Made by a program: the position numbers and the translations under genes. 15,677 nucleotides of DNA, from positions 1 to 15,677 of the forward strand of contig NW_021825413.1 in NCBI RefSeq assembly GCF_006345805.1, read 5' to 3'. Shown piece by piece: positions 364 to 14,939 of this stretch. The notes under the pieces are model-generated. The model ran no database searches. It had not been told where the DNA came from and was given only the letters and a program-made list of their open reading frames with translations. The first letter of the stretch is position 1; each line of letters opens with the position of its first letter. This DNA comes from Octopus sinensis (lineage: Eukaryota).

Positions 364-512
364 CATATATATGTATGGGTATTATAAAGTAAGAGCAGGA
401 AAAATTACATCAAAAAGTCATAGAAGATATACAGGGTAGCTATATCAAACTCCATTCTTCACCAAGTGCCACATATTAGAGGAGGCTCTTAGTAATAACA
501 GTGTAGCAAAAC

Positions 513-565
513 GGCGGTGCTTCAGCATGGCCGCAGCTCTGAGCTGAAACTAGCAAGAAAAAAAA
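513..565 (+). mobile_element. Retroposon 3' tail fragment
   Basis: GGCGGTGCTTCAGCATGGCCGCAGCTCTGAGCTGAAAC plus an A-rich end; same motif as the other two tails. Confidence 0.75.
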
Positions 566-3081: not shown

Positions 3082-3633
3082 TGTTTGTGTACGTATGTGC
3101 GTGTGTGCGTAGTATGTTTAAACGCTAGTCTTCCTCGACGAACGAGGAAGCGAAACGTGCATGAACTTTAGTAGGAGAAAATATCTATCGTCAGGCGATA
3201 TATACATACATACATACAATATATATATATCAGTAGATATAATATGTGACAATTATTCGGTAGCCAAGATAAAACTCCGAGTTTCGGATGCCGAGTTGGA
3301 AATCCACGCCACCTTCTCTTCAGATAACCGGCCATCGGAAAAACGCTATGAAAAATGACCGTTATACAAAAAAGGAAATTACTGTGTTATTTACCGCTAT
3401 TAAGACAAAAGCGCTATTCGAATGACCGCTAAGTAAGGTAAGGGGGTAAAAAGTTCATAGTATTCGCATAAGCGCGCCTGTTCATACCTACACATGTGCG
3501 CCCGCACACCCACGTGCGTGCGCATACATTCAACCACCCTCACTTGAAAAACGTACACATCCTCACTCGCATCCTTCGCCAAATGTATATGCATATACAT
3601 ACAAATTCACACACGCGCGCGCACCATTTTTAT

Positions 3634-3664
<31 letters not shown>

Positions 3665-3667
<3 letters not shown>

Positions 3668-3833
3668 AGAATTCACACACACAAAAAAAACAAAAGACGA
3701 AGACAGGTGGTGTAGACAACAAACAGATGTATTAGTATAACGCTCGGGAAGTGAAAACGTCTTTAACGTTTCGAGCCTACGCTCTTACACAGAAATCAAC
3801 GCAGAAAGAAACAAGGAGAGAAAATAAAGAATG
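3665..3833. mobile_element. Interspersed repeat family X, copy 2
   Basis: Homologous to copies 1 and 3; same orientation as copy 1. Confidence 0.75.
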
Positions 3834-3840
3834 TGTGTGT

Positions 3841-4687: not shown

Positions 4688-4914
4688 TTATGGAGTTGTT
4701 TATTTCTGGACATCTTGGTCATCCGGTAGCATAAATGACCAACATCAGAGCGATTGAATAATCGAACATGATCGAACATCAAGCGTTATCGGTCTTAGTT
4801 TAGAAGTAAATGTTCTTCGATCAATTCCAGTCTTAGTAAATAATTGGGTGCACATCGAGGAATTCTATAAAGAGAAAATAAAACTCGAAACAGTAAAAGG
4901 TCGTGGGTGGGTGT

Positions 4915-9333: not shown

Positions 9334-9402
9334 TTCCTTAAATCCTTAAAAATGTTTTAGCCCGAAGGCCGCGGTCATGCTGGGGCACCACCGCTGTTTC
9401 TT
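9334..9402 (-). mobile_element. Retroposon (LINE/SINE-type) 3' tail fused to the U2 copy
   Basis: Minus strand GGTGGTGCCCCAGCATGACCGCGGCCTTCGGGCTAAAAC followed by TTAAGGATTTAAGGA. The same motif is present in the tails at 513-565 and 14543-14581. Confidence 0.8.
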
Positions 9403-9571
9403 GATGGGCTGAATCCTGGAAGTACTGCTATACCAGGCCAACCCGTGGCAAAGGCGGAGCAAGCCCCTAACTCTTCGCCTCGTTCTAAAAATCAGTTTAA
9501 TATCGATGGTCCCAAATAGGGACCGTATCAGATATTAAGCTGATAAGAACAGATACTACACTTTGATCTTA
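9403..9571 (-). pseudogene. U2: U2 spliceosomal snRNA retrocopy, 5'-truncated (lacks about 21 nt)
   Basis: Minus strand reads TAAGATCAAAGTGTAGTATCTGTTCTTATCAGCTTAATATCTGATACGGTCCCTATTTGGGACC...GATTTTTAG...GGGGCTTGCTCC...GGGTTGGCCTGGTATAGCAGTACTTCCAGGATTCAGCCCATC. It shows the branch-point recognition GTAGTA, stem IIa (TATCAG/CTGATA), stem IIb (GGTCCC/GGGACC), a variant Sm site (ATTTTTA) and stems III and IV. The conserved 5' ATCGCTTCTCGGCCTTTTGGC is missing. Confidence 0.95.
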
Positions 9572-9682
9572 CTATTTACATGGAAAATATAATTGTAAAT
9601 ATAAAATGTAGGAAATAAATGTGATGAAATAGATTAATATCTCATTAAAAAAGAAAAGGATTTTTCTAGAAACTTTTTCACT

Positions 9683-9945
9683 TCAGGTTTTGGAGAAATG
9701 ATATTTCATTTTCGTTACAATTACATCAAAGTAGGGGCATTTTGATGCCAGAGCAGTTTGGGTACAGTCTTCGGGGCCCAATCGATTACTCTGCTTTGTT
9801 TTTATGCTCATTAAAGTGGAACATCCTTGTTTGCAAAGGTGGGTTGTTGTGAAAAGCAGCAACTTTTAGACTGCCTCATCATATGCAATTTTGAAAGCCT
9901 CTACTGCGTTTGACATCCAGAAATGTCTCCTAAACACGTCCCTTA
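9683..9945 (-). pseudogene. hAT transposase C-terminal dimerisation-domain remnant
   Basis: Manual translation gives FWMSNAVEAFKIAYDEAV*KLLLFTTTHLCKQGCSTLMSIKTKQSNRLGPEDCTQTALASKCPYFDVIVTKMKYHFSKT*. This resembles the Buster/Charlie motif FW...LLPF.TTYLCE.GFS.L..IKTK.RNRL. In-frame stop at 9866-9868; terminal TGA at 9683-9685. Confidence 0.88.
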
Positions 9946-10163
9946 CAGACGCAGTGTTGCCAGAAGAACACATTCTGTCATAACAAAGAACACGTTTTTG
10001 ATATAATTTTACTTATGTCTAATCAGCCTTCATTACCCACAAAAATTTCATTTTTACTCCACTAGGGGTAATTTACCCCGATTCGCCAACCCGTGCTCTA
10101 CACCTACTCGTCTACAGGTTACATATTACAACTATTGACCTACAAATCATAGATTACAACCAC

Positions 10164-10190
10164 ATGACTGAAACAAGTAAAATGTAAAAG
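10164..10190 (+). mobile_element. Extreme 3' tail fragment of SINE family 1 type
   Basis: ATGACTGAAACAAGTAAAATGTAAAAG matches the reverse complement of about 14525-14553. Confidence 0.6.
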
Positions 10191-10459
10191 AACAGTTTGC
10201 TCTATCAGGTTTCTTCTGGGGTTAAATACTGACGAAATGACATTAACAACAACACAAACAATAAGAACAAGGATTCTTACATAGAGATGCCTATGTAAAA
10301 ATTGTGAGCAACACCTCTGTTATTATATCTGGACTGTTATGAATGACCTATATATACATATATATACATATATATATATATATAGGTATTATATGTATGT
10401 CTCTCTTTCTCTCTATATATATATGGTATATATGCGTACAAAATATACATACATACATA

Positions 10460-10641
10460 TCGCTATCCACTACACATTCTTTATTTTTTCTCCTCATCTC
10501 TTTCTGTGTTCTTTTCTTTGGAAGAGCGTAGGCTCGAAACGTTAAAGACTTTTTCAATTCCCGTGCGTTATACTAATACATCTGTTTGTTGTCTATACCA
10601 CATGTCTTCGTCTTTTGCTTTTTTTTTTGTGAATTCTCCCC
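10460..10641. mobile_element. Interspersed repeat family X, copy 3 (inverted relative to copies 1 and 2)
   Basis: GAAGAGCGTAGGCTCGAAACGTTAAAGAC...GTCTTCGTCTTTTG is the reverse complement of copies 1 and 2. Confidence 0.75.
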
Positions 10642-10670
10642 TATATATATATATATATATATAATAATAA

Positions 10671-11539
10671 GAGTAAATAATTTCTATAAAGGCTTTTAAA
10701 AAAACCCCAATTATTTACTGGTAGAATTCGGTATGTAAATATAGCCGATTACCGGCAGGAACTTCTGTAAAGTTCAGTATATATATTGTATATAAGAAAA
10801 AGGGACAGGCAACAGGTTGCTTGACCGCATACCGAAAAAATAGAAATAGCAGTCAAGAATGCTTATTTCTATCAAAGTTGGACTCCGGGCATGACAAACC
10901 CTGCAATTCACATATGCAAAACAGAAGGAATAAGATAACGAAAACGAAGTCTGGTGGTTATCTGTGAACATCATGTTTCTGGATTATAAAACATATTGAA
11001 TATATATTTCATATATATTTTTGATATATATTCATATACATTGCATATATATTTCACATCCTTCTTCAGCACAGCTTTCCATTGAAAAGATTATCATAGA
11101 TTTATCAAATGCTACGTACCTCAAACCTTCCGACCATGCGACATCAAAAATTGAAGAAGTGAGCAAAAGCTAAACCTACATAGACGTTTGAATTCGTAAA
11201 TCTTCCCTCCAAAATTTTGCCATGCGCACTACAAAAATAGTTCCATATGATTAGAACTATTGGGTTGTCATAAGGGAGTGAAAAATCCAATAGTAATATA
11301 ATAATAAAGAGTAAATAATTTCTATAAAGGCTTTTAAAAAAACCCCAATTATTTACTGGTAGAATTCGGTATGTAAATATAGCTCGTTTTCGTTATCTAT
11401 TCTTCTCGTTTTGCATATTGAATTACAGGGTTTGTCGTGCCTGGAGTCCAACTTTTGATAGAAATAAGCATTCTTTGACTGCTATTTCTATTTTTTCGGT
11501 ATGCGGTCAAGCAACCTGTTGCCTGTCCCTTTTTTTCTT
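10671..11539. repeat. Composite direct (A) and inverted (B) duplication
   Basis: A: 10671-10745 equals 11309-11383 (75 nt, identical by eye). B: 10794-10947 is the reverse complement of 11384-11539 with scattered differences. Confidence 0.92.
10962..11074 (-). ncRNA. Candidate type-I hammerhead ribozyme (PLE-type)
   Basis: CTGTG (stem I) - CTGAAGA - A - GGAT...ATCC (stem II) - A - GAAA - CAT G ATG T (stem III) - T - CACAG (stem I'). Predicted cleavage triplet GUU. Confidence 0.65.
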
Positions 11540-11719
11540 TATATATATATATATATATATAATATATATATAATATATATATATATATACTTTCAAAATA
11601 TATATCTGGATTCGGAAAGACACACAATGACACTCATTCACCACATTCCCTCTCTCTCTCTTTCTCTCTCTCTCCTCTCTCACACACATACGCACATAAC
11701 AAATACATCAGATATACAG

Positions 11720-12901: not shown

Positions 12902-12969
12902 TTATTAAATTATATATATATATATATAGATATTATATATTATACATACATACCGACATACATACATTA

Positions 12970-13467
12970 CAGGGTGCGATGAATGATCTCTCGTCTAAAT
13001 TACTCAAAAATGAAAAGAACACTGACACCTCATTTTAGCATATATGTACCGAATTTAATAAAAATTTGAAATACTAATGAGTAAATTTATTCAATAAAAT
13101 CGCCATTGGCTTCATCCACAGTCTCCAGATGGTTTTGGAATCTCCTGCGACTCTTCTTGATGCAGAGTTTAAATTGGTAAATGCTGCCATAATCCCAGCC
13201 TTCAGTTCATCTTTGGTACTAGAAGGAGTTTTGTTAGTCTCACGTTCAACTGCGCCCCACACATAATAATCAACGGGGTTGCAGTGCTGGAGTTTGGTGG
13301 CCAGTTGTTAGGAGTGATGTGGTCGCAGAAATTGTCTCACAGCTATGACTGTGTTCTCCTGCTTCTGTTCATGGTGCAGGGTCTTCCAGCAGCTACCCTC
13401 TTCCAGATATAGGGCCTTACAGCAGCCACCCTCTTGGCCTAGGGTAGCACCACCAGCTCCAGGCATC
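12970..13467 (-). mobile_element. Tc1/mariner element 3' half with one TIR (probably maT/DD37D-like)
   Basis: TA (12968-12969) is followed by the TIR start CAGGGTGCG at 12970, adjacent to a transposase remnant. The subfamily is inferred from the WPPNS..CNP.DYYVWG motif; the second catalytic Asp region is disrupted in this copy. Confidence 0.85.
13087..13467 (-). pseudogene. Mariner-type DDD transposase C-terminal remnant
   Basis: Pieces across frames read CLELVVLP*AKRVAAVRPYIW, SRRTQS*L*DNFCDHITPNNWPPNS, CNPVDYYVWGAVERETNKTPSSTKDELKAGIMAAFTNLN and EANGDFIE*. There are stops, frameshifts and an internal duplication (CAGCAGCYACCCTCTT at 13387 and 13420). It overlaps ORF 13074-13262. Confidence 0.9.
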
Positions 13468-14426: not shown

Positions 14427-14514
14427 CTTCTATTGATAAATGTTCTAAAATCTTTCACAGCCTTGGATTTATATATATACACACATATATATAATATATA
14501 TGTATAATATATCT

Positions 14515-14939
14515 CTCTTTTTACTCTTTTACTCTTTTACTTGTTTCAGTCATTTGACTGCGGCCATGCTGGAGCACCGCCTTTAGTCGAGCAAATCGAC
14601 CCCGGGACTTACTCTTTGTAAGCCCAGTACTTATTCTATCGGTCTCTTTTGCCGAACCGCTAAGTGACGGGGACGTAAACACACCAGCATCGGTTGTCAA
14701 GCAATGCTAGGGGGACAAACACAGACACACAAACATATACACACACATACATATGTATATATATATACATATATACGACAGGCATCTTTCAGTTTCCGTC
14801 TACCAAATCGACTCACAAGGCATTGGTCGGCCCGAGGCTATAGCAGAAGACACTTGCCCAAGATGCCACGCAGTAGAACTGAACCCGGAACCATGTGGTT
14901 GGTAAGCAAGCTACTTACCACACAGCCTCTCCTGCGCCT
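14515..14939 (-). mobile_element. Full-length tRNA-derived SINE (family 1, resembles octopus OR-type/CORE-like SINEs) with internal microsatellite
   Basis: Head AGGCGCAGGAGAGGCTGTGTGGTAAG...GGTTCCGGGTTCAGTTC with A/B-box-like motifs, central GCATCTTGGGCAAGTGTCTTC, internal (TA/TG) tract, tail GGCGGTGCTCCAGCATGGCCGCAGTCAAATGACTGAAAC plus (GTAAAAGA)n. The family name is from memory. Confidence 0.88.

Follow-up and report, generated by a model that had tools for sequence, protein, structure and literature searches.

The locus examined here raises the question of how a U2 snRNA came to be joined to a retroposon tail in the DNA of an octopus, and whether the product is a single accident of retrotransposition or one copy of a family. 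Every SINE is proposed to begin as a chimera between a small cellular RNA and a tail recognised by a LINE, and the examples known from so early a stage come mainly from mammalian L1. The present locus suggests that this reaction also takes place in a cephalopod, here with a stringent tail of the hairpin-plus-microsatellite type and in a host whose DNA is more than one-tenth SINEs. The window, i.e. the whole stretch of 15,677 nucleotides of Octopus sinensis DNA that was analysed, contains this U2–tail element at the coordinates given to it by the first-pass annotation (9334–9571). Read on the minus strand, the chimera has the order 5′-[U2 nt 22 to 3′ end]-[0–5 nt]-[tail]-3′.

The U2 head and its junction with the tail

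U2 (RF00004) is the sole match above the gathering score that Rfam cmscan returns in the whole 15.7-kb window (9590..9399, minus strand, 145.8 bits, E 1.6e-30; the same when repeated locally), and weaker Rfam matches and tRNAs around the locus include none of note. On the minus-strand reading, true similarity to U2 begins at 9571 with TAAGATCAA, corresponding to U2 nt 22–30. In the Rfam alignment the preceding positions 9590–9572 are AT-rich, unlike stem I and flagged for non-canonical pairs, and the sequence is close to consensus from nt 22 onward. The first ~21 nt of U2, comprising stem I and U2/U6 helix II, are absent. A decayed full-length U2 was considered and rejected, as the first 19 nt of the Rfam match fit U2 no better than AT-rich background.

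The U2-derived segment (9403..9571, minus strand, nt ~22 to the 3′ end) retains the branch-point recognition sequence GUAGUA, stem-loops IIa, IIb, III and IV, and the Sm site GAUUUUUAG. In the Rfam alignment, pairing is full or nearly full in stems IIa, III and IV and reaches six of seven pairs in IIb. The Rfam match and the minus-strand reading thus uphold an earlier description of U2 from about nt 22 to its mature 3′ end, and the alignment upholds that of well-paired stems IIa, IIb and IV. The fold of the whole chimera has a z-score of −5.5, and ten CpGs remain in its 237 nt; this persistence of CpGs, together with the intact U2 stems, indicates limited decay.

At its 3′ end, stem-loop IV closes with ...CAGCCC (9411–9406) and is followed by ATC (9405–9403), which corresponds to the short unpaired 3′ end of the model. 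The next four bases, AAGA (9399..9402, minus strand), are aligned by Rfam to that same unpaired end; they are possibly the last 1–4 nt of mature U2, untemplated bases, or an A-rich lead of the tail. U2 therefore ends at, or within four bases of, its processed 3′ end, the mature octopus end being taken from the Rfam model.

Beyond AAGA, in the same minus-strand orientation as U2, lies a retroposon 3′ module of ~65 nt (9398–9335) made of two hairpins, AAAAC and a perfect (TTTAAGGA)x2, which reads AACAGCGGTGGTGCCCCAGCATGACCGCGGCCTTCGGGCTAAAACATT and then TTTAAGGATTTAAGGA (to 9335). Its A-rich lead AAAC and hairpin 1 (GCGGU-G-GUGC-cCCA-GCAU-G-ACCGC) occupy 9371..9398, with hairpin 1 proper at 9394–9371; this part is recognised by the recurrence of its motif, and 93% of its cells are paired in an alignment of 13 copies. 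Hairpin 2 (GGCC-UUCG-GGCU, 9359..9370) is predicted by folds and the alignment and leads to the spacer AAAACATT (9351..9358), the place of which is taken by GAAAC in other tail variants when the minus-strand reading is aligned with them. The terminal repeat itself (9335..9350) consists of two perfect copies of the octamer (9350–9343 and 9342–9335) and is the counterpart of the (GTAAAAGA)n that ends a SINE tail found elsewhere in the window.

The first-pass annotation had placed a conserved retroposon tail and a short terminal repeat within about 10 nt of U2. The distance proves to be 0–5 nt, and the terminal repeat is present, more exactly as the perfect octamer TTTAAGGA repeated twice. The same annotation had seen no recognisable snRNA 3′ box or gene flank, in agreement with a retroposon tail that starts within 5 nt. 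That the downstream sequence could be the true 3′ flank of a U2 gene, which would have overturned the chimera, is excluded: it is a tail common to SINEs.

A portable 3′ module in octopus retroposons

The 19-nt core of the tail, GGTGCnnCAGCATGrCCGC, occurs three times in the window at ≤3 mismatches, versus none in 200 shuffles; the copies other than that on U2 lie at 516–534 (+) and 14560–14578 (−). Another 16 copies are found in about 41 kb of Octopus vulgaris DNA, a sample of three loci (L021, L022, which is an ENA contig, and L023) retrieved via SINE-derived and mariner-derived peptides; the SINE-derived peptide matched a hypothetical protein of O. vulgaris as well as the ENA contig. This amounts to 19 cores in 56 kb of window and loci, or about one per 3 kb. 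The core recurs on at least four different upstream bodies across the window and the O. vulgaris loci, which makes the tail a portable 3′ module shared among octopus retroposons.

Two other elements of the window serve as comparators. At 14514..14938 (minus strand) lies a full-length copy of an abundant octopus SINE, with a tRNA-like box A/B head, an internal microsatellite and tail variant v1 (14514–14584). Read from 14938 to 14514 it terminates in CAGTC-AAAT-GACTG-GAAAC-(GTAAAAGA)n, and it is 88–95% identical to many O. vulgaris copies in the fetched loci. The second comparator, tail variant v2 (507..565, plus strand), was recognised by motif search and fold; it has the hairpin 2 CAGCU/AGCUG, follows a different upstream body and ends in CAGCT-CTG-AGCTG-GAAAC plus an A-rich run. 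All three tail variants of the window, including that on U2 (v3), adopt the same two-hairpin fold and finish in short repeats, which are octamers in two of them. Hairpin 2 on U2 matches the others in position and shape, not in sequence (CAGUC-AAAU-GACUG in the SINE, CAGCU-CUG-AGCUG in the copy at 516). In the alignment of 13 copies, 90% of the cells of the tail hairpins are paired, versus 19–45% with partners slid, and two pairs carry double changes, a number equalled in 177 of 500 shuffles. The predicted two-hairpin structure is thus compatible with the alignment, at a level of covariation no better than that of shuffles.

The layout of the tail recalls a published signature of CR1 3′ ends and of SINEs mobilised by CR1, namely a hairpin followed by an 8-nt terminal microsatellite (PMC8665684, PMC5729268). 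A stable hairpin lies directly upstream of a microsatellite of ~8 nt in the octopus tails as well, as TTTAAGGA x2 on U2 and GTAAAAGA xn on the SINE. The tail therefore resembles CR1-type tails, and ‘CR1-like’ is used here as a description of layout, not of clade membership. The LINE groups for which O. vulgaris shows recently active insertions include CR1 (PMC13282606).

Compared with the tail of the abundant SINE, v3 departs in a few positions of hairpin 1 and has a wholly different hairpin 2 and octamer. Given this complete difference, the donor of the tail is a different and rarer element than the abundant SINE. The 56 kb of octopus DNA in the window and the O. vulgaris loci contain no other copy of v3 and no parent LINE or SINE bearing the exact v3 tail. 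A scan of the window and L021 for RT motifs revealed no RT-coding sequence and no partner LINE. The exact v3 core has one match in GTDB genomes and IMG/VR, of 24 nt, in a GC-rich coding region of a Thermoleophilia MAG (L024 4264–4287). It is judged a chance match, as similarity extends on neither side.

Full-length copies of the abundant SINE were observed at 14514–14938 (−) in the window, at 3172–3558, 9833–10230 and 19322–19855 in L021, and at 11568–11924 in L023. Their 5′ ends adjoin TATA-type sequence (...ATATA or ...CATA before GGCGCAGG), and such sequence also lies 3′ of the (GTAAAAGA)n tail in most copies; it is absent from the U2 chimera. These surroundings suggest a TA-repeat target preference, or a TSD, for the partner enzyme of the abundant SINE.

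Origin of the chimera

The locus is probably a non-functional, lone or sporadic template-switch chimera produced by one retrotransposition event. That U2 and the tail were joined in a single RNA-mediated event is highly likely whatever the later fate of the product. A junction 0–5 nt past stem-loop IV and AUC points to processed U2 RNA as the source, and not to a U2 gene together with its flanking DNA. The processed 3′ end, the shared orientation, the module-typical join point and the 5′ truncation of U2 together argue for one fusion at the RNA or cDNA level. U2 meets the tail about where other octopus bodies meet the same module, and 5′ truncation is a hallmark of LINEs. The 5′ partner thus ends at the mature 3′ end of a small RNA, with at most four unassigned bases, and the 3′ partner is the 3′ end of a 5′-truncated retroposon in the same orientation, as expected of a chimeric retrocopy.

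In the mechanism that would account for this architecture, a LINE reverse transcriptase would prime at a nicked target on an RNA bearing a stringent-type 3′ recognition module. Only ~65 nt of this tail-bearing RNA, i.e. the two hairpins and the 8-nt terminal repeat, would be copied before the enzyme moved over to mature U2 snRNA as a second template, starting at its 3′ end. U2 would then be copied back to about nt 22, where the cDNA would be joined to the chromosome. Template switching, the standard mechanism by which a reverse transcriptase that has begun on a LINE or SINE tail moves on to an abundant nuclear RNA, is established with L1 for U6 and more rarely for U1 and U2 (PMC4494074 discussion; PMC4476161), and likewise for a fungal LINE (PMC2104539); it is also the published route by which new heads reach CR1-type tails (PMC8665684, PMC5729268). 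We infer that template switching was the joining step here, that the partner LINE was probably CR1-like, as the layout of the tail suggests, and that the locus is presumably inert. Capture of mature U2 by a non-L1 element, as proposed in the first-pass annotation, is the best-supported reading of a mature-ended, 5′-truncated U2 on a non-L1 tail.

Neither end of the chimera is surrounded by an adjacent direct repeat of ≥6 nt that would qualify as a TSD. The sequence TAAGA(A)TC is present at the start of U2 (9571–9565) and again 14 nt beyond the octamers (9320–9313). This pair is not significant, and it could reflect microhomology at the 5′ join.

The absence of a TSD linking U2 to the tail leaves room for two unrelated events, in which a U2 retropseudogene later received a severely 5′-truncated retroposon copy at its 3′ end, and octopus DNA is indeed very dense in tail-bearing fragments (19 in 56 kb). 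However, with about one tail per 3 kb, both orientations counted, a same-orientation tail would start no more than 5 nt from any given point with a probability of about 0.002, and this probability is lower still for the rare variant v3. Moreover, U2 and the module are not separated by an A-rich or other tail such as a separate U2 retrocopy needs. Two independent insertions, among them the truncated tail copy with a TSD of its own that the first-pass annotation named as a refuting case, are thus very improbable rather than disproved, since the argument is a probability drawn from the density of tails. An RNA that was already chimeric before reverse transcription would give an identical final architecture. 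Such an RNA could arise by ligation of U2 to a tail fragment, or by read-through, in which transcription of a U2 gene would continue into a retroposon fragment inserted immediately 3′ of it; in either case the tail would recruit the LINE enzyme. The current model for U6/L1 chimeras has the two RNAs ligated before reverse transcription (PMC11838501). This model, however, depends on the special 3′ end of U6, which mature U2 is not known to share. Read-through, for its part, requires that a real U2 gene carry an insertion no more than about 8 nt from the U2 3′ end, upstream of the 3′ box, and a pre-formed chimeric RNA is on the whole improbable, though less so than two separate insertions. As for a functional variant U2 gene, the high Rfam score and the intact stems IIa–IV, branch-point recognition sequence and Sm site would be in its favour, but unrelated AT-rich sequence stands where nt 1–21, with stem I and the U6-pairing helix II, should be, and a retroposon tail occupies the place of the 3′ box. 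Both features exclude a functional gene for practical purposes, and the upstream side cannot hold a promoter in register because the 5′ end of U2 is missing.

A single chimera or a U2-headed family

Template switching in one event also has to be weighed against amplification after the fusion. The locus could be a 5′-truncated member of a multi-copy, U2-headed, SINEU-like family, whose master copy would be an ancestral U2–tail chimera, or a U2 gene closely followed by a tail, mobilised repeatedly via the tail. This is a serious contender that we nevertheless consider unlikely. The layout is SINE-like, U2 being joined about where other octopus bodies meet the tail module, and crocodilians have SINEU families built from U2 (PMC4494074). 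In O. vulgaris, a curated repeat annotation lists a SINE class ‘U’ with one family and 369,490 bp, 19 ‘recently active’ insertions of which total 13,954 bp, as well as a class ‘U-L1’ with one family and 52,753 bp (PMC13282606). These classes do show that snRNA-related repeats exist in octopus, but ‘U’ and ‘U-L1’ are automated, unexplained labels in a paper in which the word ‘snRNA’ occurs 0 times, and the mean recent ‘U’ insertion is ~734 bp versus 237 bp for the chimera (PMC13282606). If the chimera belongs to them, the family is capped at roughly two thousand copies.

The chimera itself is poorly equipped for amplification: U2 has no internal promoter, and two T5 runs (the Sm site and CATTTTTAAGG) would stop pol III, a difficulty with internal T runs that was raised in the same way for SINEU (PMC4494074). 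No second U2–tail copy is present in 41 kb of O. vulgaris DNA or in the rest of the window. This is a very weak bound: as the 41 kb contain neither U2 nor the v3 tail, only a hyper-abundant U2-headed family is excluded. The more specific proposition, in which the locus belongs to an amplifying U2-headed, SINEU-like octopus family that rides a stringent CR1-like LINE, is somewhat more doubtful than membership of a family in general. Such a family could correspond to the uncharacterised ‘SINE/U’ class of the 2026 O. vulgaris annotation, and no snRNA-headed SINE outside crocodilians, nor any independent of a poly(A)/Tx1 partner, would have been characterised before it.

Searches with the junction in larger collections returned no candidate. 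The minus-frame peptide spanning the junction (49 aa) had none among 5.8 billion proteins. The plus-frame peptide (52 aa) gave 117 matches among 1.84 billion representatives, none reaching into the tail-derived part, and these matches were set aside as spurious ORFs that lie antisense to the U2 genes of a wide range of eukaryotes. The junction pattern had 20 matches in JGI metagenomes and IMG/VR, all due to chance, on GC-rich bacterial contigs without U2. A separate observation concerns protein P0004, which lies outside the window: this 100-aa ORF is antisense to U2 and has two U2-derived stretches 49 aa apart, possibly representing tandem partial U2 units of ~147 nt, i.e. a U2-derived tandem repeat in another organism.

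The significance of the locus depends on this distinction. If the junction recurs, octopus becomes a second, independent case of snRNA-headed retroposons and a natural test of how promoterless elements become transcribed. If it is unique, the locus is an ordinary dead retrocopy, useful chiefly as a marker and as evidence that a non-L1 enzyme switched templates.

Comparison with known chimeras and SINEs

In its mechanism the octopus chimera resembles the snRNA/L1 chimeras of mammals, and in its layout SINEU or a re-headed CR1-tailed SINE. The mammalian set comprises U6/L1 chimeras and, more rarely, U1, U2 and U5 with L1, Alu or mRNA fragments. As in the octopus, a sense snRNA lies 5′ and its 3′ end adjoins a 5′-truncated 3′ piece of retroposon; the product is inert (PMC4494074 discussion, PMC4476161, PMC11838501), as is presumed for the octopus locus. 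The octopus locus differs in its stringent-type tail of hairpin plus octamer instead of L1 with poly(A), in its U2, itself 5′-truncated where mammalian U6 is usually full length, in the TSD, of which none is seen, and in its cephalopod host.

Crocodilian SINEU (Kojima 2015) shares with the octopus element a head derived from U1 or U2, in this case a U2-derived 5′ part, and the nature of a short non-autonomous retroposon with internal oligo-T runs and no internal pol III promoter, for which template switching is the proposed origin. The multi-copy nature of SINEU families, however, is demonstrated; they have poly(A) tails and owe their mobilisation into a Mariner target to Tx1, whereas the octopus element is known from one locus and its 3′ end consists of two hairpins followed by (TTTAAGGA)2. 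SINEU was not found outside crocodilians by Kojima (PMC4494074).

A parallel for the tail is found in passerines, where the hairpin and 8-nt microsatellite module passed from TguSINE1 to PittSINE under a new small-RNA head (PMC5729268). Head capture by template switching during reverse transcription is a proposal in the case of these CR1-tailed bird SINEs (PMC5729268). The head of PittSINE is a tRNA, the internal pol III promoter of which allowed amplification, whereas the U2 head of the octopus chimera has no such promoter. The partner LINE is identified for the passerine SINEs (PMC5729268), and none was found for the chimera in the octopus DNA scanned. MINE of Magnaporthe, which combines WEIRD RNA with the MGL LINE, likewise illustrates template-switch chimeras made by non-L1 LINEs outside mammals; it differs in its fungal host, in a captured RNA that is not an snRNA and in its documented multi-copy set (PMC2104539). 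No description of a mollusc chimera of U2 with a stringent tail was found in the literature, and a full-text search found no paper containing the tail or junction sequences.

Other features of the window

The chimera lies between two blocks of a satellite with a 28-bp unit of about TACAACTACTGACCTACAAACTACACGC. The first block extends from 6546 to ~9225, stopping ~110 nt before the chimera, and the satellite resumes at 10106–10192; between the blocks lie the chimera and ~640 nt of unique sequence. The block that starts at 10106 runs straight into ATGACTGAAACAAGTAAAATGTAAAAGAA, which is the 3′ half of a SINE-type tail without hairpin 1. The chimera is thus placed as if inside a larger plus-strand retroposon the body of which had expanded into satellite.

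Tail variant v2 (507–565) is held within a unit of ~310 bp flanked by a perfect 17-nt inverted repeat (GTAAGAGCAGGAAAAAT at 388–404 and ATTTTTCCTGCTCTTAC at 678–694). It could represent a foldback or MITE-like unit that contains a retroposon fragment, or else a palindromic target. A remnant of a mariner-type transposase is present at 12935–13383 (−), with the peptide ...NPVDYYVWGAVERETNKTP...; it is 80% identical at the DNA level to L023 10015–10473, annotated as a 105-aa hypothetical protein in O. vulgaris. Finally, a dispersed repeat family of ~200 nt is represented at 1068–1244, at 3637–3836 (+) and at 10472–10673 (−), as well as at 4849–5045 in L021, and each copy adjoins a TA/TG microsatellite. 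The copies at 3683–3836 and 10472–10625 form a 154-nt inverted pair, 90% identical, that spans the region of the U2 chimera.
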